Notes under the pieces: generated by a model
Seen by the model: only the letters and a program-made list of their open reading frames with translations
Databases searched by the model: none
Told to the model about the DNA's origin: nothing
In this document: piece by piece, positions 16,742 to 30,200 of the stretch
How the letters are laid out: the number at the start of each line of letters is the position of its first letter
How positions within the stretch are numbered: position 1 is the stretch's first letter
DNA from: Salpingoeca rosetta
Taxonomy: Eukaryota > Protista > Choanoflagellata
Length of the DNA: 64,000 bases
Reading direction: 5' to 3'
Assembly: GCA_033442325.1 (NCBI GenBank)
Contig: JAWQFM010000016.1
Span: 843,155 to 907,154, forward strand
Position numbers and translations under genes: made by a program

Positions 16742-19212
16742 GCACTTGCAGACTTGGCCTTGGTTGCTGGTTTGTGCTTGTGCTTGTGCTTGTGCTGGGT
16801 GCCTGGGTCGCTGCTGCTGTTTGACCGGAGAGGCGGGAATCCAAAGGCAGCACGCTCTTCCGGGCTGCCCCTGTAGCCAAGATAGCACTGAGCAGCTGCC
16901 TCGCTGTGCCGCTCAAAGCAAATGGCGCGGCGCAGGGCGCAGATGTGGTTGCGCAAGCGTGTCTTCTGTTTCCGCAGCCTACCCTCCTCCTTCCGCTGAG
17001 CAGGCTTGAGGGCGTGTGAGTCACTGCCCTCGCGCAAGTTGCGCAGCTGATACTGCTCAAGACGAGGGTGCCTGCATCTGCTGCCCAGGCGCACGATCTT
17101 CTTGGTAACGGCGAGCTGCTTGTGGCGCGTTGCCTCCCGACGACGCCCAGCTGTGCCTTGCTGGTCGCTGCTGCCGCTTGTATCACTGTCAGCGCCGTCA
17201 CTGCCGTCACCGCCGTCCCCATCGTCACCATCGTCGTCGCCGATCTCATCACCGAGGAGCTCGGAGAGGAACTGGTCCAGCGCGTGGTTGGTGAAGCAGA
17301 CGACGAGCACCTTGAGCTTGAGCACCTGCACAAGGAAGCGTGTGATGACCACGCCAATGTGCGTCTTGCCTGTGCCTGGTGGGCCCTGGATCAGCGCCAG
17401 GCGGTTGCGCATGACGTGGACCATCGCGGCGCGCTGGCTGGCGTTCAGCTCTGCACCGCCATCGCGGCTGCGCAGGAACTGGGCAAGCTGTGCATCGTGC
17501 TGCCCACGCTTCATGTACTCTGGAGGGCCGACGACTGTGCGGCGGTGGCGCCGTGCCTGCCGCTTCCTGTTTGCTGGGGCCGGCTGCCACCCGCCGCCAT
17601 CATCACCATCATCACCATCATCAACGTCATCAACGTCATCAACGTGGCTGTTGGTATGACGGGAGTTGTTGCTGCTGGGTGCGGTGTTGCTGGCACTGGA
17701 ACTGGCGTCAGTGGTGCTCGTGCCATTGTGGTGGCCAACATTGATGAGGTCTCGCTCCTTCAGCTTGTAGTTGGTGTTCTTGCGCACTTCCTCCTCAAAG
17801 GGGAAGTCGCTCATTTCCTGCAGCTGCCGCAGCGGCTTGTCATATGCGAACAAAGGGGACAGCTGAAGCAAGGTGTACGATCGGTTCTGTTCTTGCTGCG
17901 CGGGCTGCTTCTTGAGGACGTGGGTAATGCTCCCGCACTCGTGGTGGACCAGGTCCCTGACAATCTCGTCGGCCACTGCGTCATCGAGGAGGGTGAGATG
18001 AACCTTGCCTTTCATCAGCATGCCGATGTCACGTATGCGGTCGATGCGGGCAAGGTGCTTCGGCACGCCGTTCTCAAGCAACACGACAAGCCAGTCTGCC
18101 ATGAGCACGCGCTCGCGCTGCCAGAAGCGGATGCGGGAGGTATTGTTGAGCTTGTGGTACGCACTGTCGCGCCCAAGCTCAAAGGTGAAGGTGATGGCGC
18201 GGCCGTTGAGCAGCAGGTCAAACTCGCAGGGGCGCACGTTGTAAACCGGAAGATAGCGGGACTGCGTCAGGCCGAACACCGCGTCGCTGTCGTCGCTGTT
18301 GCCGCTGCGCAGGAGGCCGATGTTGTCTTCGCGCAGAAGACGGAAGTGGTGCTCGAGCAGCTGCTCCATGTTGGCATTGCCTTCCAGCGGGAAGAGGTGC
18401 TCGCCAGGGGCCAACGATCGTTGCAGGACCTCAATCTTGGGGACGATGGGCAGTGTTCGAAATGATGTACCCTCAAAGAGAGCCAGAAAGGCTTGAACGT
18501 CGCTGTTGCTGGACCGGCACTTGCGAACGGCAGGCGATTGCCGAAACCTGTGCATCGACGACAGGATGGATCGGGAAAGCAAGCCCTGAGTGGTCGTGCA
18601 CACGATGCGGAACAGCTTGGCGATTGCGGTGATGTGCTCCGCGTGCGACTGGCCCGGGTGTGGGGTCTCAATCTCGAACAACACTGCCTTCAGCGCCCTG
18701 GAGTCGGAGGCCATGGCACGGAGGGCGGCGTTGCGTTGCCGCTCAAACTCCTTCGCTTCGATGACCAGCAGGCGGTTGATCGCGTTCACCCAGCGATCGG
18801 GGGTGAAATCATTGGCGTCAGAAGCCCTGGGAAGGATATCGTTGAGGGGTTTGGACAGATTCAGGAGCCTAACAAGCTCGCTGTCAGAGGAGCGGCGAAA
18901 GTCAGCGAGAGCGAGCAGAAAGACGCGCTTCTTGGAAGGGCTGGCCTTCTTCTTGCTGTGGGCGATGCCCTCAAAAGCTCTTCGATAGCGCTCAAAACCA
19001 GGGTCTTGCTGTTGCTGTTGCTGCTGCCGCTGGTCGCGGTGGCGGTTTTGCTGGCGTCGCCGGCTGGACGATGAGGATGCATGAGACGATGTCGTTGAGG
19101 AGCGAGAGGAGGTGGAGGATGACGAAGAAGATCGTGCGGCTGATGCTGCCGCGCGTCGTGGCGCTCGAAGGCGTGGCCGTGGTCGTTGTTGTTGCTGCGG
19201 AGACGCTGACAT
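11368..19212 (-). CDS. ZNFX1: ZNFX1-like Upf1-family (SF1B) RNA helicase with NFX1-type zinc finger, intronless, about 2614 aa
   Basis: Single 7.8-kb ORF; likely start at 19212 (MSASPQQQ). Motifs: LEHHFRLLRED, LIQGPPGTGKT, VVCFTNHALDQFL, IIGCTTTGAA, EEAGEILEAHVL, LIGDHKQLRPKV, LNVSLFERL, QHRMRPAIS, VLTPYGGQ, TVDNFQGEE, NVMLSRA, then GGCSQECPRPLPCGHACKLRCH. Confidence 0.92.
16647..16740 (-). repeat. (AACAGC)n hexamer repeat encoding an (NS)n tract inside the ZNFX1 helicase insertion
   Basis: About 15 perfect copies of ttgctg on the + strand, in frame. Confidence 0.9.
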
Positions 19213-19215
19213 GGC

Positions 19216-19305
<90 letters not shown>

Positions 19306-19545
19306 TTGAAATACAGGGAAATGAACACGAGAGAACGAGAACAGCAGGGTGAAGGACAGGTTGAGTATGTGTGTGTGTGTGTGTGTGTGCGTGTTGCGGA
19401 GCTGACTGTCCATCAGGTCCATCGATCTCGAAACAACAACAAGTCTGTCAACAACAGAAGAACAGAGGAGGGTCGGAGCGTCTCACACTCACACTGACTG
19501 GCTTGGTTGGTTGTGTGGAGAGGAGGAGAAAAAGACACTTACAAA

Positions 19546-19598
<53 letters not shown>

Positions 19599-20276
19599 GA
19601 CGCACTGACATGCACACAACACCACACAAACACACCAGCGGTTGGTGTTAAAGTGCGGACAGCTAGATTATTGGTTGAAGTTTTCAACAAATGATCTCCA
19701 ACAAAGGAAACTGCTGACTCGACGCTTTTCGTGGGGCTGACACAACAGAAACTGCGTCCGCTCTTTTGTGGTTGCTTCGCTTGTTGCTCCTTTGCTCGTT
19801 GCTTCTTGTGTGATCTTGTGTGACATGGCAGCCTTCGTGTTTGCTTCTGCTTCTCAGTGTTTCGAAGGTTGGCTGTCTGGCTGTGATGGCGACCACCAGC
19901 ATTAGTAACAATACATCAACGTACACATGACAGGTTGGTTGCTTCAGTGTGTTGGCGTGTGTAACCCATCACTTTATCACTCCATCACTCCATCACACAC
20001 AGTCACACCGTCACACCGTCACGCCGTCACTCCGCCACACCGTCACACCGTCACTCTGCAGCAAGAGCAAGGAAGCTGAGAAGCTGGGAAGGCAGGCAGT
20101 TGTGGCGCTGGAAAGTTGTCGGTGCTCCAAGTCGGTGATGTTCATTTTCCTGCTTCTCATTGACAGCCAGACAGTCCAAGCAAGCAACGTCCCAAGTACT
20201 CGAGCACACAAGACGCCCAACTGAAGGAAGATACGCCTTCCGATACAAGTTCTTTCGGCTTCGCAGACAAGTCAAC

Positions 20277-20534
20277 ATGCCCGGCGGTGGAAAAGGCGGT
20301 AGTGGCGGAGGAAAAGGTGGCAGCCACGGCGGTGGCAGCCAGGGCCATGCTGGTGGCAAAGGCAGCGGCAGTGGTGGAAAGGGGCCAGGCGGCTGGCCGT
20401 CAACCACGGGCAACGCTTCGGGCGGCGGGCGCACCAACGCGCCACCTGGCGGCAAGACGTCTGGCGGATGGCCTTCCACCACGGGCAACCCTTCAGGTGG
20501 CGGCCGCTACAATGCGCCACCCGGCAGCAAGTGA
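20277..20534 (+). CDS. Small Gly-rich protein (85 aa) with two copies of GGWPSTTGNxSGGGRxNAPP
   Basis: ATG in aacATG context. The 25-aa internal duplication differs at many synonymous sites, and a paralog lies 1.2 kb downstream. Confidence 0.75.
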   Translation: MPGGGKGGSGGGKGGSHGGGSQGHAGGKGSGSGGKGPGGWPSTTGNASGGGRTNAPPGGKTSGGWPSTTGNPSGGGRYNAPPGSK

Positions 20535-21247
20535 GGCTGAATCGAGGCAAAGGCGAATGACGGATCGGCAGCAGCTCTCCCAACAACTCGACGACTCTGC
20601 GACCCGATGCGTGTGAATTTGAGCTTTGTGTGCTTGTTCACGTGGTCTCGGGTCCTGCGTGTTCCCTCTGAATTGCTTCCCCTTCTTCCTGCTTCTTTCG
20701 CCTTTCTGATTCCTCTTCCTTCTCCCTTTCCTACATGTGTGTGTGTGTCTTGCCTTTGCTTCTTGCAACCTGCAAACGGTGCCGCAGCAGTAAACAGCCT
20801 CAAGACACCAGCCTGTTGCTTAAACCTTTAAACCGCATCACAACCTCATCAGGGTGAGTCTGTCTGTAAGCATTTGCGTGCGGTGGAATCGAACCCAATC
20901 ACTCAAGGAACAGCGGCAAGACAACGCACCCCCTGTGGCACAGCGGGATGACGGTACGGTGGCGCCTTGCACAACTTTCTTCACTCGCGTTGCTTTGCTT
21001 GCAAGGCTTCGTTTGCATTACTTCATCAACATCACTCAAGCAATACACAATGGAGAAGTAATAGGGTGGAAGTAACATGTAATTTAACACTCACAACCAC
21101 AACACTCCCACCCTGCGCCTCGCTTACTTGATCGACTCAACGCCGCCGTTTCTGGCTGTCATCAACGATACTGGCTCACATCTATTCATTTTCTTTGCTG
21201 ACACGCAACGGACACACGGAGGAACTAAGCGGGGGAACAAGAGCCAC

Positions 21248-21279
<32 letters not shown>

Positions 21280-21459
21280 CAAGCAAAGGAGCGCGGGAAC
21301 CCACCAAGAAGGCACAACAGCACACCAAGGACAAGGAAAAGGCAAGACAAGAAGACAAGGACGGGGCTTCGGCGGCGTTCAGAATCCAGCCCACAAACAG
21401 CACGAACAAGAAGACCAAGTCCAATCCTCCTTTCAGCAGCCTTTAAGCCAGCCAGCAAG

Positions 21460-21744
21460 ATGCCTGGAGGCGGAAGAGGCGTGGGCAGCAAGCCCGGAGG
21501 AGACAAGGCTGGCCGGGGCAAGGCAAAGGGCAAAGCCGGTGGATTCAAAGGCGGTGCCCACGGCGGCAAGAGTCCGGGTGGATGGAAGATCCCCGGTGTG
21601 CAGACTGGCGTGGGCAAGGGCGGCGGACACGGCAGCAAAGGGCCTGGCGGCTGGGCCTCCACCACGGACGTTCCACCAGGCACGGGCCCCACTGGCCAGC
21701 GTCCAATCTCCCCACCTAAACCACCAGCGGCAATTGGCCACTGA
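21460..21744 (+). CDS. Small Gly/Lys-rich protein (94 aa), paralog of the 20277 peptide
   Basis: Same MPGGG start. Shares (S/G)KGPGGWxSTT and a second GGKSPGGW unit; aagATG context. Confidence 0.65.
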
Positions 21745-21872
21745 AGCGTGCGCGCGCCCTCGTGTGTGTGTGTGCGCGCGCGCTAGTGTGTGTGCTAGTG
21801 TGTGTGTGTGTGTGTGTGTGTGTGCTAGTGTGTGTGTGTGTGCGTGCTTGTGTGTGTGTGTGTGTGTGTGTG

Positions 21873-21951
<79 letters not shown>

Positions 21952-22040
21952 TGGGTGGTGTCTGCTGCTCCTCAAATACAAACAAAGCAGAAATTCATTG
22001 GAAGATATGGGTCAATACTCATGACTTCAACCGCAACCCA

Positions 22041-24284
22041 ATGCTCACGTTTCTTCGGCAAGAGGATGAAGACAGCGTGGAAGACCGCGCGCAAGTCAGA
22101 CACGTACGTGTGTGAGCGTGGCGGCGGTACTGGTGGTTGTGGTGGGTGGCTGACGTTGATGATAGGGAACCACGCGCGTCACGCTGTTGTGACGTGTGAC
22201 CTTGGCTTGCTACAAGTTCTCTTGCTGCCTTGTACTTGAGCTGTTGCGCCTGTGGCACCAACAACACGAGTGAAGCGAGCGAGCAAACTAACATTCACAC
22301 CCAACGACGACAACAACTTTCGTTCACACACACACACATGTACACACATGTACACACACACGCGCTCGCGCGCACACGCACGCACGTACACGCACACACA
22401 TGTACATGCACGTTGGTTGCAGGTGCTGGTGTCTGCGTTTCCAACGCCAGCAGAGGCATGTCTTGTGGACACGTGCCGACCATATCCAAAGCCTTTGTCC
22501 CTTTCTGCTGTGGCGGTGAAGAGCGGCAACGAGGATGACGGGGTTTGTGACGGCAGCCGTGAGAGCAGTGGTGCTGACGAGATTGTGGCCCACATTCTCT
22601 TTCTTCCTGTCACACTACAACGGCCAAAGCATGGTGCTTCGATGCGCAGTCAGGTACAGCCAATATGCTTCGTGGCACATGCATCACGCTTTGCACAAGC
22701 AAGAACATGAGATCACAACGACCACACACACGTACACACACGCACACTCATGTCCACACACACACACACACTGACACGCACGCACACACACACACACACA
22801 CGTTCATGCACGCTCATTTTCACGCACACACACACTGACACACACACACACACACACACACACACCAAAATTCACAGCCCAACGTGACGCTACTTGCGCC
22901 GTTGAGTGTGCTGCCAAGTTGCCAAAGACAAGGCATTGGATCGAAACTTACAGAGTGGGCGCTGGAGCAACAGAGGGCCCAAGGTGTGGCAGCAGTGTTG
23001 GTGCTCGGCTCAGAGTACTACCGCCGGTTCGGGTTCAGGCCCGTCGCAGACTTTGACCTGCACTATCCAGATGCAAGCCTAGATCCGCATTTCTTCTGCC
23101 TTGAACTGCAACAAGGCAGCATGTCTTCCTGGGCTGGCGCAACAGCCGTGCTGCCGAAACAATTTGATCTGCTGGAGCACGCGGTGGATGTTCCTGCCCG
23201 CGACACGGACACCATTCCGTACGCCCCGCTCATCCTCATCTGCAACAACCTTATGGCAGCCGTAGGGGATGGCACAGGTAGGAAGGAGAGTGATGGCGAG
23301 CGAGGGCAACGAGAAGGCGAGGAGGGCATGCACCGCAGCACACAAGCAGCCCTGTATGAACAACAACAGCAAAGGTTGCAACCACAGCAGCAGCAGCAGC
23401 AGCAGCAGCAGGAAGCGCTGCCTTTTGGGTATGCCATTGTGGACGCCAACGCGCTTGCACGCGAAACATCACCAGCACACATGGCATCCACGTGGTGTCA
23501 GCTGCTCACAGAGGCAGGGGAGTTTGCTTCAGTGCATGCTGCGCGCGAGCGATTCGCTGCATCATTCGCCCCATACGCCGGCAGGGCGGGTGCACAGGAA
23601 CAGGAGGCAGCACAGACAGGCAGCCATGACCGCAAGAACGATGGGGACAGCAGCAGCTGCGGTCTCTTTGGCGAACGCTGCTTGTTCGTCGTGCACCGTG
23701 ACGCAAAACGCCGCATGCATGCCGTCGCCACTGCCACAGACTGGCTGCCAAGTCGCGGTCTGTTACAGCGCTGCCCAGGCTTGATGCGCTACCTCACATC
23801 CCCAGCACCGCCAATCGCAGCAGCCACCACCGCGACAGTACCGTCGCAGCCATCGCAGGGGTCCACACCAAAGCCGCCGGCTACGGAGAGCCAGGCCTCA
23901 GTTCCGCAGCCGCAGCGGCCGCTCAAGGACCTGCGCTACGAGATTGTGACGGAGGAGAGCAGCGGGCTGGCACGCCTGGAGTGGGTAGCGGTGCACCCAC
24001 AGTTTCGCGGGATGGGGCTGGGCCGCGCCATTGTGCACGCTGCCCTGCGCATGGCCCTCAAACGCGGCCAGCAGGCAGCGGTGCTCTCCACGCAGACCAC
24101 AACTCCGCGCGCCGTGCGGATGTACACGCGCTCCTTCGGGTTCGAGCTCTTCTCCGAAGACAAGGCGGAGCTGGTGGCAAAGGAGGGGGAGGAGGAGGAG
24201 GAGAGGGAGGAGGAGGATGCAACAGAACGCGCAGAACCAGGGCCTCGACAGGCAGCTATCGCCGCCATTGCCCATTTGCTGTGA
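22041..24284 (+). CDS. Tandem GNAT acetyltransferase (N-terminal YhbS-like GNAT plus C-terminal GNAT)
   Basis: Exons about 22041-22103, 22423-22653 and 22878-24284. First domain: LRQED..|AFPTPAEACLVD..LSLSAV..IVAHILFLPV|LLAPLSVLPSCQRQGIGSKL..VLVLGSEYYRRFGF. Second domain: LEWVAVHPQFRGMGLGRAIV..LSTQTTTPRAVRMY..FGF. Confidence 0.85.
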
Positions 24285-27293: not shown

Positions 27294-30200
27294 ATGGCAA
27301 GAAGGACAAGCTCAAGCGCCAGGGCCTGCGACTGCTTCATTTCACTGCGCTTCAATGAAGCCATCAACGCGGGAAAGGCGCTGCAGGCTGCTCTCTCTGA
27401 GCGAGGCGTGACAGCCTTCCTGTGCGAGGTCCCGCCAGGCAGAGACATCGAAAGCACCATCGTGGAGGCCCTGTCAACCTGCAGGATGGCCGTCATCATG
27501 GGGACCAAAACGTATGGGAAGAAGACACCAGCCTCGTTTGGCACAAGAGAAGAGTTGAGGTTCATCATCGACGAGAAGAAGCCATTCTTCTACATCAAAA
27601 TGTGCGCCAAGCTCAAGTCAACTACCGCACGGTTTCGCCTCCCAGATACCATCTCCTACCATATGTGGCAGCCCGACAACAATGATCCCAACATTATTGT
27701 GCCAGCCGATCTCGTCGACGGGATTGTGAAGAGCCTCACGGTTAGTCCTGCTATGTGAGTGTGAGGAGAGCGAGGATGGAGCATGACGTGCAGTGCAAAA
27801 GGTGGGGCAACTTGAAGGAGCAGTGGGGACTGGTCATTCGTGCCTCCCTGCAGTGCTTGTTTGTCGCAATCCCAAGCCAGGCTAACAGAACCGTGATTTC
27901 TGCAATGCATGCCCCTTGCCCTTGTTGCTTCCGCTTGAACCCTCACCTCCTCCTCCAGGATTTGCCCGCCGCAGGCGTGTACAATGACATTGACGATGTC
28001 TTGTCTCCTTTACCTGACCACGCCTTCAACTTTCCACAACCAGAGTCGCAAGTGACACACCATGCTGCTTCCGTAATTTCCTCCTCATGCCCAGACCTCA
28101 CAAAGGACACGGCTTTGGTGGAGAAGAACAGCTCAGTGTCTGGCGTGCCCACAAGCGGCCACATGGCCTCATCCAAGACCTCCGGCCATGGCTCTGGCCC
28201 AGAATCGCCCGCGCACACACCTCCTATCTCGGAAGGCGTGGATGGTCAAACTGCAACTTCACACGGGACGCAAGGCACGTCCTCGCAAGCGCCGTCATCC
28301 TCACTGGCTGTCGCCTCGCCTCCAAACGCTCGCCTCTCACAGGAGCAGAGAAGCCAGACACTGTGTGATATGACATCGTCATCCAAGAACACGACTTCAA
28401 CCACCTCGCCGGTGAGCAACCATGTCGTGACGAAAAGTTCTCGGTGTGCTTGTGACCTCTCCAGAAGTGAACAGTTGGTTGTTCACACCGATGGACCTCA
28501 TCCGTTGCTTGATACCTGGCTGCTCTGGGCACTGTTAGAAGTATCTTCATCCATCATTATCATATCGTCTTGCTACTCAACTCCTGCTTTGTCCCATTTG
28601 CACATACTCATGCCTCACCACCGAAACGTGCATCAACGAGCCACTCACACGCACTCACTCGCACACACACACACATAAGGCTCTGCGACGTAGATTACCG
28701 GCTGTTTCAGAAAGTGCGCCGATATTGCCTCCTTTACTCAGACGGCATACCATTGCCACAAGCTTAAGCAAAAATACAAGCTTTTCCTGCTGTCTCCCAC
28801 CTCTCATGAAAAAGCGACCTGTTGAGCATGCTCGTGATGGCACCTGGGCCCAATGGCAACAGAAGCATGGCCGGCTTCACCACCGGCTGATGTATCTGAC
28901 TCCTGACGCCATCTTTCACGTGAATGTCATCAAACAAGAGGAGAAGGCTTTTGTCTTAAAGCCACTCAGCAAACTTGCGGTACACGACGAAGGCGCCAAA
29001 CTGGTCGTCAAGAACAGCAGCGGCGATACACTTCGCATTTACGCACCCGACACGCCCGAAGGCGGATCCCATTTACAGCAATGGAGGGCGGCACTATTCG
29101 CTGCCAAAAGATGGAACGGCAATGACGACATAGTTCTGCCAGCCTCAATCAAGGCAAACCACCAGTTTGCGGCCGCAATATGGAACCTCATTTTCCCCGG
29201 GACAGCGAGGGCACAGCACCCAGAGTATCGAGACGTTTGGTTGCGCTGGCTGTGTAACCCAAATGCGCAGGCGACGTTCGAGACAATGCATCGCTTGTTC
29301 ATGCGAGCTGTGAGGCAGGTAAACGACGACGCCGCGGCGCTGTCGTACTTGAATCACCTCACAGATCTTCACCACAGCGTGCACACCCGTATGATCATGA
29401 ATGCAATTGACCCCAGCTCCAACATGCTTACCTCTTGGAAGGAGCATACGATGCCCGACAGCAAGGCAACCCACAAGCACATTTTTTTCTCGCTCTTCAC
29501 GGCGTATGTCAGCAAGCAAGCGAGGTTCGCGCAGCAGCATGACAAAACGGGTGCTTGGCCGGGCTTGCTCTGCGCAGCTTTGGACTACCATCCCAGCGTT
29601 CTCCTTGACAGCTCAACAGGGCCTTCCGAGCAAGCTTTCACCGGGCCAACGATCGCGGCAGCTCAAGAAGGCAAACCAGATGATGGCGTCGGTTGTGGTG
29701 CTGGCGCTCACCACGCCGCTGAGCTGCCAGGGGAGCACCAGCACTCTCCGTTTGACGCAAACACCACAGCGGCCATGCAAGCTGAGGAAGAGAGGCTGTC
29801 ACGCCCTCAAGGGGAAGTGTGCAGCGTGCCCCTCACTTGTTTCGAGGAGCTCGTGTATTTCTTCAACGTGGATCACCTGCGGTACTACGCCTGCAAGCAT
29901 TGGGCGCAGCATGATGTCAGTCGCTACCTCTCTCTCTTGGAGACGCAGAACGCCGGTGTTCTCAAGCACGTGTTTGATGGACCAACACTGCAAGGCAGAC
30001 CAGCGGAGCGACTGTGCTTGTTGCTGCCATGCCTCGATATCCGCTCACAGGAGGACCAAGCTGCCATCGTTGAGGCGTTCACCGAGGACGGCGGTCTGCA
30101 CATGGGCACGTTTCGTGTGTTCGCTGAGGCGTGCGTGGCCAAAGCAAAGACAGATCTCCTCGCATTCTCCCTGCGAACGTTCTTCAGCACCCATGCCGCC

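Follow-up and report, generated by a model that had tools for sequence, protein, structure and literature searches.

The locus described here raises the question of whether a very short open reading frame (ORF) in the choanoflagellate Salpingoeca rosetta, encoding a glycine-rich peptide that is repeated in tandem, is a genuine gene, and, if it is, where this peptide comes from and what it might do. The ORF lies at 20277-20534 on the plus strand of a 64,000-nucleotide stretch of genomic DNA (contig JAWQFM010000016.1, positions 843,155 to 907,154 of the forward strand), the whole of which is referred to here as the window. It is a genuine, highly transcribed nuclear eukaryotic gene, and its 85-residue product carries two copies of a peptide motif that recurs, conserved at the level of the peptide, in bacteria, in viruses and in other eukaryotes. 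The gene and its transcript comprise the following features:

20277-20534, plus strand: coding sequence of 85 codons plus stop, for a Gly/Lys/Ser-rich, basic, predicted-disordered micro-protein
20277-20372, plus strand: N-terminal low-complexity region of 32 residues, rich in Gly, Lys, Ser and His, delimited by alignment with bacterial relatives
20373-20447, plus strand: repeat 1 (25 residues), with the motif GGWPSTTGNASGGGRTNAPP; bacterial relatives have a single motif, which aligns with this unit
20448-20522, plus strand: repeat 2 (25 residues), with the motif GGWPSTTGNPSGGGRYNAPP; a tandem duplicate in which all family-invariant residues are retained
19988-20808, plus strand: unspliced monocistronic mRNA of about 0.81 kb, defined by stranded RNA sequencing and transcript contigs; 5' end approximate
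20138-20224, plus strand: upstream ORF (28 codons) in a reading frame other than that of the main ORF, from the list of ATG codons in the 5' untranslated region (UTR)
19927, plus strand: second upstream ATG (50 codons), relevant only if the transcript begins near 19914

The micro-protein gene and its transcript

ORF calling and translation place the start codon ATG at 20277 and the stop codon at 20532-20534. The protein begins with MPGGGKGG and ends with PPGSK, the three residues GSK closing it after the second repeat; residues 1-32 correspond in the alignment to the variable-length start (M-[SAGP]-K-G...) of bacterial family members. A separate repeat search returned a 75-nucleotide unit whose two copies, 20372-20446 and 20447-20521, are 79% identical, so that the initial annotation, which described an 85-residue ORF with two 25-residue copies of a motif, is confirmed by translation and repeat search alike.

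The ORF is part of a discrete mRNA. Two stranded raw-read runs of the same species (X41, X42) and two sets of transcript-like contigs were examined over positions 19000-24000; they contain a block of reads that starts at approximately 19990 (some reads extend to approximately 19914), reaches a depth of 100-127 in X41 and X42 with the first mate on the minus strand, and is directly followed by zero depth at 20837-21003. Transcript contigs of 809 nucleotides (20000-20808, run X18) and 813 nucleotides (19988-20800, run X25) span the mRNA end to end, and no splice joints were found within it among the reads of this region. Since the helicase gene on the minus strand shows the opposite read orientation, the block represents plus-strand RNA, the same strand as the ORF; these strand-specific reads also demonstrate that the micro-protein gene and the ZNFX1-type helicase gene are divergently transcribed, as the initial annotation had stated. 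The depth over the micro-protein mRNA is the greatest in the region examined, compared to approximately 5-50 for the helicase gene and 10-35 for a neighboring GNAT gene. The main ATG has a purine at position -3. Eight tandem 8-nucleotide units (CACNCCGT) are found at 19970-20062, at the start of the 5' UTR. A gene with this product is missing from a large gene-call collection, and since no such product is on record there, annotation has overlooked the micro-protein gene; the suspicion that it would be easily missed was justified, also in view of the lack of a match in family libraries (see below).

The two repeats are identical at 21 of 25 residues and at 58 of 75 nucleotides, and the codon differences between them are predominantly silent (10 synonymous vs. 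4 non-synonymous). The NG86 method yields a non-synonymous divergence (dN) of 0.12 and a synonymous divergence (dS) of 0.85 for repeat 1 vs. repeat 2, a ratio of 0.14 over 25 codons; for the 20-residue core alone, dN is 0.07 and dS is 0.72. Since dS is close to 0.85 and every family-invariant residue is nevertheless intact in both copies, the duplication must be an older event, and the peptide has been preserved since. Both repeats fit the DNA pattern of the motif exactly and align to the profile of the family; the window contains two occurrences of this pattern vs. 0.00 expected from shuffles.

The protein consists of 42% Gly, has an isoelectric point (pI) of 11.3, and is fully hydrophilic. 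Inspection revealed no hydrophobic N-terminal stretch, and since the 85-residue protein has no hydrophobic segment, it has no signal peptide, as originally noted; typical bacterial members also lack one, and other relatives are fused to ubiquitin, a cytosolic protein, so that the secreted antimicrobial peptide that had been considered is not supported. The AlphaFold2 model has a mean predicted local distance difference test (pLDDT) score of 52 and is devoid of secondary structure; it predicts that the protein is intrinsically disordered.

A family of small motif proteins in bacteria

The initial annotation mentioned a very similar motif in tiny uncharacterised bacterial proteins; such a motif does exist, and it is far more widespread than had been suggested. 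One genome per bacterial and archaeal species was scanned with a degenerate DNA pattern for WP[ST]TTGNxSGGGR, which was found in at least 120 loci or genomes belonging to at least 12 bacterial phyla, compared to a chance expectation, calculated from base composition, of at most approximately 0.15 matches over all genomes scanned. Among the hosts are Pseudomonadota (alpha, beta, and gamma), Bacteroidota, Myxococcota, Planctomycetota, Verrucomicrobiota, Chloroflexota, and Binatia, and further Spirochaetota, Campylobacterota, Fibrobacterota, Latescibacterota, Gemmatimonadota, and Balneola. In nearly all listed bacterial loci, the match falls within an ORF of 25-90 codons. Most of these ORFs follow a Shine-Dalgarno-like sequence and encode an M-[SAG]-K start, a Gly/Lys/Ser-rich stretch of varying extent, the motif, and finally a few residues that terminate in Lys or Arg; the shortest proteins of the family, those of Acinetobacter, comprise 25 residues and hardly more than the motif.

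The matches listed include 117 distinct bacterial DNA versions of the motif, in which the third codon positions take all four bases and the residues stay constant; for this reason the peptide, and not the DNA, is the conserved entity, in agreement with the differences between the two window repeats and with the claim first made from them. Conservation extends beyond the positions that are fixed by the search pattern, to Asn at the second position after Arg (112 of the 117 versions among the matches listed) and to Pro at the fourth (85 of 117). The motif that defines the family reads [GN]-W-P-S-[TK]-T-G-N-x-S-G-[GKS]-G-R-x-N-x-P-[PS]. Its profile detects 779 clusters in a collection of 5.8 billion proteins, and 343 were retrieved at E ≤0.001 when 1.84 billion representatives (50% identity) were searched exhaustively with a profile. 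With the window protein itself as the phmmer query against 5.8 billion sequences, relatives P0011, P0008, and P0088 were found at E-values of 8.5e-11, 1.7e-7, and 1.2e-6, respectively; the best match (E 8.5e-11) is a two-repeat protein of 59 residues on a prokaryote- or virus-like contig, the two motifs of which continue with T-N-A-P-P and Y-N-A-P-P, as they do in the window.

The window protein shares with the family the motif, the small size, the Gly/Lys/Ser-rich start, and the basic tail ending in Lys or Arg, in addition to significant sequence similarity. Two to four tandem motifs are found in other proteins of the family as well, and since multi-motif proteins occur elsewhere, the duplication in the window represents a recurrent theme; the window gene is laid out like a typical bacterial member, except that its last 25 codons are duplicated in tandem.

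Viral ubiquitin fusions, eukaryotic copies, and domain fusions

The motif is also present on 15 viral contigs. In seven clusters and two IMG/VR contigs, canonical ubiquitin of 76 residues is fused directly to the motif peptide; the C-terminal Gly-Gly of ubiquitin (...LRLRGG) is followed by M-P-K-G-G-K... or K-G-G..., a Gly-rich stretch, and then the motif. The relatives that are translated right after ubiquitin are only viral (P0019, P0031, P0035, P0042, P0047, P0081, L138, L139). Their contigs are AT-rich and densely packed with small genes, and encode Rpb2, PCNA, thymidine kinase, histone, and RING proteins, a gene content that points to giant viruses of marine protists. Ubiquitin-motif fusions on giant-virus-like contigs are located as follows:

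L121:10001-10357, ubiquitin-motif fusion
L123:10001-10375, ubiquitin-motif fusion
L138:38-403, ubiquitin-motif fusion
L139:398-790, ubiquitin-motif fusion

Phage-like contigs encode members of 28-63 residues, and one protein of 352 residues with an N-terminal motif; when the GenBank phage collection was searched by tblastn with a 28-residue phage member, no match was obtained, but low-complexity masking is the likely cause and makes this negative uninformative. On marine phage contigs (L140:7361-7519; L135), the small gene is located between an ORF of 255 codons and one of 382 codons. By eye, the 255-residue product resembles a single-strand DNA-binding protein of the T4 gp32 type, which suggests a replication or recombination module.

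Eukaryotic copies differ in their N-termini. In the diatom Epithemia clementina, the gene contains an intron and its product has a presequence-like N-terminus; in the eukaryote-like relatives P0162, P0251, P0160, and P0059, the motif directly follows a mitochondrial-type presequence, and in P0026 it comes after a signal peptide that has an AFAP-like site. Behind the motif, three of these five relatives have a 170-residue domain without an assigned family. The predicted targeting sequences hint that some eukaryotic copies may act inside organelles. Transcription and motif-bearing homologs, on which the initial annotation had made its proposal depend, have thus both been found, the former as a discrete plus-strand mRNA and the latter in bacteria, viruses, and diatoms.

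The motif is also attached to folded domains. Homologous bacterial proteins of 175-220 residues end in a poly-Asp linker and the motif, as seen in their alignment; in the AlphaFold model of this family, residues 1-150 form a tandem alpha/beta domain (pLDDT approximately 90), and the linker and motif are disordered (approximately 50). Fold searches with this 150-residue domain retrieved generic matches only (dual-BON, KH/NusA, BolA, ZT_dimer), with template-modeling (TM) scores below 0.5. Marinobacter proteins show the order motif, acidic linker, and unrelated domain, and the motif occurs at the N-terminus of unrelated proteins of 180-350 residues. None of the family libraries (Pfam, NCBIfam, PHROGs, PADLOC) recognized the fused domains, and the Marinobacter-type C-terminal domain has no match in the ESM Atlas. 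One relative, P0129, has an N-terminal RMF-like domain with a subthreshold match to Pfam RMF (PF04957; E 0.022, 15.3 bits vs. a cut-off of 27.9); the window protein has no match to this Pfam family. The motif is modular: it stands by itself, is repeated in tandem, or is attached to the N- or C-terminus of folded domains that are unrelated to each other. Among the functions that the initial annotation had offered, a short linear motif provides the best fit with this modular placement and with the predicted disorder.

Origin of the choanoflagellate gene

Repeat 1 of the window protein and its flank (K-G-P-G-G-W...G-G-G-R-T-N-A-P-P) represent a sequence subtype that is found in five Planctomycetota, mostly Phycisphaerae, and also in one genome each of Verrucomicrobiota, Latescibacterota, and Paludibacter; one Phycisphaeraceae protein is 67% identical to the window protein over its full length. 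Another flank (G-Q-G-N-x-G-G-W...G-G-G-R-S-N) characterizes the giant-virus fusions, the diatom copies, marine phage copies, Rhodobacterales, and Bacteroidota. Since each subtype crosses phyla, horizontal transfer appears to have been frequent. The flanking signature of the window gene is mainly seen in Planctomycetota (Phycisphaerae), and the gene has therefore most likely entered the choanoflagellate lineage by horizontal transfer, as had been considered possible from the outset; since the window gene stands apart from the diatom and giant-virus subtype, we infer from these signatures at least two separate entries into eukaryotes. The Gly codon usage of the micro-protein gene resembles that of the host helicase gene; host-like Gly codon usage, long UTRs, and a position between eukaryotic genes on one contig indicate that the gene is integrated and does not represent contamination.

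A proposed portable docking motif and its alternatives

The best explanation, which we hold with roughly even confidence, is a horizontally spread, disordered, and portable docking motif for one near-invariant target. Acting as a docking peptide (a short linear motif), whether singly, in tandem for avidity, or tethered to folded domains through a flexible Gly-rich or poly-Asp linker, the motif would recognize a single target that bacteria and eukaryotes possess in almost the same form. The charge of the peptide, together with its occurrence in viruses and in fusions with ubiquitin, would make a nucleic acid or the ribosome and translation apparatus the most likely target. The ribosomal proteins eL40 and eS31 are made as C-terminal extensions of ubiquitin, and this parallel, the charge (pI 11.3), the organelle-type presequences in eukaryotic copies, and the single subthreshold RMF-like fusion all favor such a target, each of them weakly. 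A more far-reaching proposal, that the motif is a universal, virus-disseminated docking peptide on an invariant site of a machine that operates in bacteria, in organelles, and in the cytosol of eukaryotes alike (the ribosome or a nucleic-acid structure being the most plausible candidates), is tentative, and we regard it as possible rather than probable.

As a caveat, several points weigh against the docking interpretation. No tool returned a binding partner, and the target is inferred from composition and context only. The disorder predicted by AlphaFold leaves room for a small defined fold or for folding on binding; the dN/dS estimate for the repeats is based on 25 codons, a small sample, although its direction agrees with the family-wide picture; and the main ATG, from which translation is predicted on the basis of sequence, has one or two upstream ORFs before it. 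The donor assignment, based on a low-complexity signature of 20-30 residues, is fragile. Finally, the defence-island setting of the motif in Moraxellaceae, described next, could point to a conflict-related role instead.

In such a role, the motif protein would be a virus-host conflict factor on mobile elements, in the part of a decoy, a trigger, or an inhibitor during defence against viruses or during counter-defence; this is unlikely. All-against-all clustering of 1028 flanking ORFs from the 120 listed bacterial loci did not identify any neighbor that was common beyond genus-level synteny, to which the largest cluster (10 of the 120 listed loci) also belongs; 68 immediate neighbors yielded matches to 53 Pfam families, each occurring once; PADLOC found few defence-model matches and no recurrent family among the same 68 neighbors, and no Rfam leader or riboswitch was found at the 18 loci scanned. 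Many copies lie amid housekeeping genes (GroES/EL, CspA-like, aldehyde dehydrogenase). Moraxellaceae form the exception; in Acinetobacter and Psychrobacter, a gene for a 25-residue protein is followed by one to three tandem paralogs of 146 residues that end in the same motif, and the arrays are flanked by genes for a PtuB-like HNH nuclease and a CoiA-like nuclease, and by type I restriction-modification genes. The Acinetobacter arrays, which also adjoin a gene for an uncharacterised 368-residue protein and may be an uncharacterised defence-island module, are located as follows:

L025:3444-4873, array of 25-residue gene and 146-residue paralogs
L110:4121-5097, array of 25-residue gene and 146-residue paralogs
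L007:1639-2160, array of 25-residue gene and 146-residue paralogs

A search of the neighborhoods for defence genes, as proposed in the initial annotation, was therefore positive in Moraxellaceae and revealed no recurrent family elsewhere among the sampled neighbors. A conflict factor would also be consistent with the phage and giant-virus copies, with the frequent transfer implied by subtypes that cross phyla, and with the location of the window gene, which adjoins a ZNFX1-like helicase gene and is 7 kb away from a gene with a weak TIR match; yet defence families are not enriched among the 68 sampled neighbors outside Moraxellaceae, many copies keep company with housekeeping genes, and the motif proteins themselves match no PADLOC model.

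A stress protectant similar to hydrophilins or late embryogenesis abundant (LEA) proteins, or a condensate scaffold in which the motif serves as a "sticker," is quite unlikely as well. Its attraction lies in bulk properties, namely the Gly content of 42%, hydrophilicity, predicted disorder, and high transcript level of the window protein, combined with one to four motif copies among the relatives, and in the precedent of small repeat-motif hydrophilins that are common to bacteria and eukaryotes (group 1 LEA, GsiB). Like hydrophilins (group 1 LEA, GsiB, and KGG-repeat proteins; PF10685, PF00477), the family consists of small, Gly-rich, hydrophilic, disordered proteins with a repeated motif in bacteria and eukaryotes; unlike them, it has an unrelated motif, viral copies, and domain fusions, and shows no match to KGG (PF10685) or LEA_5 (PF00477). 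Further, at least 13 consecutive residues are near-invariant across phyla, a tighter conservation than would be expected of a bulk-property protein; minimal members have just 25 residues; and copies in phages and giant viruses, or poly-Asp tethering to folded domains, fit poorly with a protectant.

It is highly unlikely that the window gene is a transcribed, untranslated relic of the transfer, effectively a non-coding RNA, with repeats that are similar because they were recently duplicated. The one or two upstream ORFs before the main ATG, the predicted status of translation, and the clear decay of a neighboring paralog (see below) would accommodate such a relic; the dS of approximately 0.85 between repeats that both retain the family-invariant residues, the host-like Gly codon usage, the high expression, and the purine at position -3 of the ATG argue against it.

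A precursor of ribosomally synthesized and post-translationally modified peptides (RiPPs), in which each repeat would be a core and for example the Pro-flanked hexapeptide STTGNP would be freed by a prolyl peptidase, is very improbable: near-identical cores rich in Ser, Thr, and Asn are indeed repeated here and in relatives, the long N-terminal domains of some members could serve as leaders, and one two-repeat relative adjoins a radical SAM gene, but no modifying enzyme, protease, or exporter is conserved beside the gene in the 120 listed bacterial loci, the 25-residue members are nearly all motif and too short to include a leader, conservation covers far more than any plausible core would, and placement before folded domains or after ubiquitin is atypical, so that the RiPP function suggested in the initial annotation finds no support. 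Compared to multi-core RiPP precursors (cyanobactins, dikaritins, amatoxin MSDIN), the family shares the tandem conserved short peptide and the Pro residues flanking a possible core, and differs in its lack of co-located maturation genes and of a leader or signal, and in its cytosolic context.

Novelty and relation to known systems

Family libraries do not contain this protein. Neither the window protein nor its bacterial and viral relatives have a match in Pfam or NCBIfam (the Pfam search of window and bacterial members extended to E-values of 1); the motif proteins have no match in PHROGs or PADLOC; a sequence-profile search of the PDB gave no match at E-values up to 10; and the ESM Atlas contains only unnamed bacterial clusters of 56-62 residues. 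Among the relatives from the profile searches, no Pfam domain covers the motif, and every given name is "hypothetical protein." The motif strings were not found in the 8.4 million full-text papers searched, and a concept search on giant-virus ubiquitin fusions turned up nothing relevant in the literature. We rate the family as a new kind of micro-protein or motif, with the proviso that absence from libraries is no proof that nobody has described it; the rating is based on comparison with ubiquitin extensions, tail-borne linear motifs, and hydrophilins (discussed above), from each of which the family departs in the defining property, despite some likenesses.

The extension in the giant-virus relatives resembles those of the ubiquitin-eL40 and ubiquitin-eS31 fusions in being small, very basic, and positioned directly after canonical ubiquitin, and cleavage by a deubiquitinase would release it. 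In contrast to these fusions, the motif extension lacks a zinc ribbon, does not resemble eL40 or eS31 in sequence, and has no ribosomal match in Pfam, and the window ORF has its own ATG, no ubiquitin upstream, and an unspliced mRNA. Linear motifs on protein tails, such as the C-terminal acidic tip of SSB, AT-hooks, and the cargo-loading peptides of encapsulins, are likewise short, invariant, disordered, modular, and flexibly linked; they differ in sequence, and the WPSTTGN motif is longer (approximately 20 residues) and conserved across bacteria, viruses, and eukaryotes. Compared to targeting tags, free-standing genes of 25 residues that barely exceed the motif would be unusual. The Trp-cage of the exendin-4 C-terminus also has a single Trp, a Gly/Pro/Ser-rich stretch, an Arg, and Pro-Pro, and the motif could similarly pack very small; the spacing differs, there is no helix before the Trp, and AlphaFold confidence is low, so that this is a resemblance only. 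A translation-arrest leader peptide, considered in view of a Trp located 16 residues before Pro-Pro, was rejected, since the genes that follow it vary and the motif is also found within fusion proteins and behind ubiquitin.

Paralog and neighboring genes in the window

Downstream of the micro-protein gene, the window contains a second, related ORF:

21460-21744, plus strand: diverged tandem paralog of 94 residues with two degenerate units of 23 residues, identified by alignment with the main gene

The paralog starts with M-P-G-G-G-R-G, resembling the main gene, and continues with degenerate units (GGWKIPG...) that, in the alignment, lack the family-invariant P, N, and R of the motif. A third copy of the 75-nucleotide unit, with 61% identity, lies within its ORF at 21630-21704. 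RNA depth over the paralog is only approximately 1-6 and mostly antisense; it is probably a decaying duplicate, and it shows how the main gene would look without constraint.

The neighbor on the minus strand is a 2684-residue superfamily 1 (SF1) helicase of the ZNFX1/Upf1 type with AAA_11 and AAA_12 matches; the other neighbors in the window are a double GNAT and, 7 kb away, the start of an ORF at 27294-27755 (plus strand) with a weak TIR_2 match (E 5e-4, 20.9 bits vs. a cut-off of 28). None of these helicase, GNAT, and TIR neighbors is common to the relatives of the micro-protein, and a functional link to the ZNFX1-like helicase or to the GNAT is accordingly not supported. At 19028-19178, reads of two runs have 26 other letters in place of 149 nucleotides of the low-complexity 5' coding region of the helicase, a difference that looks like strain or allele length variation in a coding repeat.

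Significance

The motif core is more tightly conserved, and over a broader span of organisms and viruses, than almost any known disordered motif, and this degree of conservation implies a specific and important partner. If the interpretation proposed here is correct, the small proteins described here would constitute an overlooked micro-protein family of hundreds to thousands of members, which gene callers and databases likely missed because its members are tiny and low in complexity. If the motif is the universal docking peptide considered above, no other short linear motif would be known to be conserved in bacteria, phages, giant viruses, and eukaryotes alike, and giant viruses would carry a third kind of ubiquitin C-terminal extension protein; to our knowledge, eL40 and eS31 are the only other conserved ubiquitin extensions. 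The giant-virus ubiquitin fusions, the diatom-like copies with organelle-type presequences, and the Acinetobacter defence-island arrays provide entry points for experiments. For the choanoflagellate genome, the micro-protein gene adds one more unannotated, highly expressed gene of probable bacterial origin.

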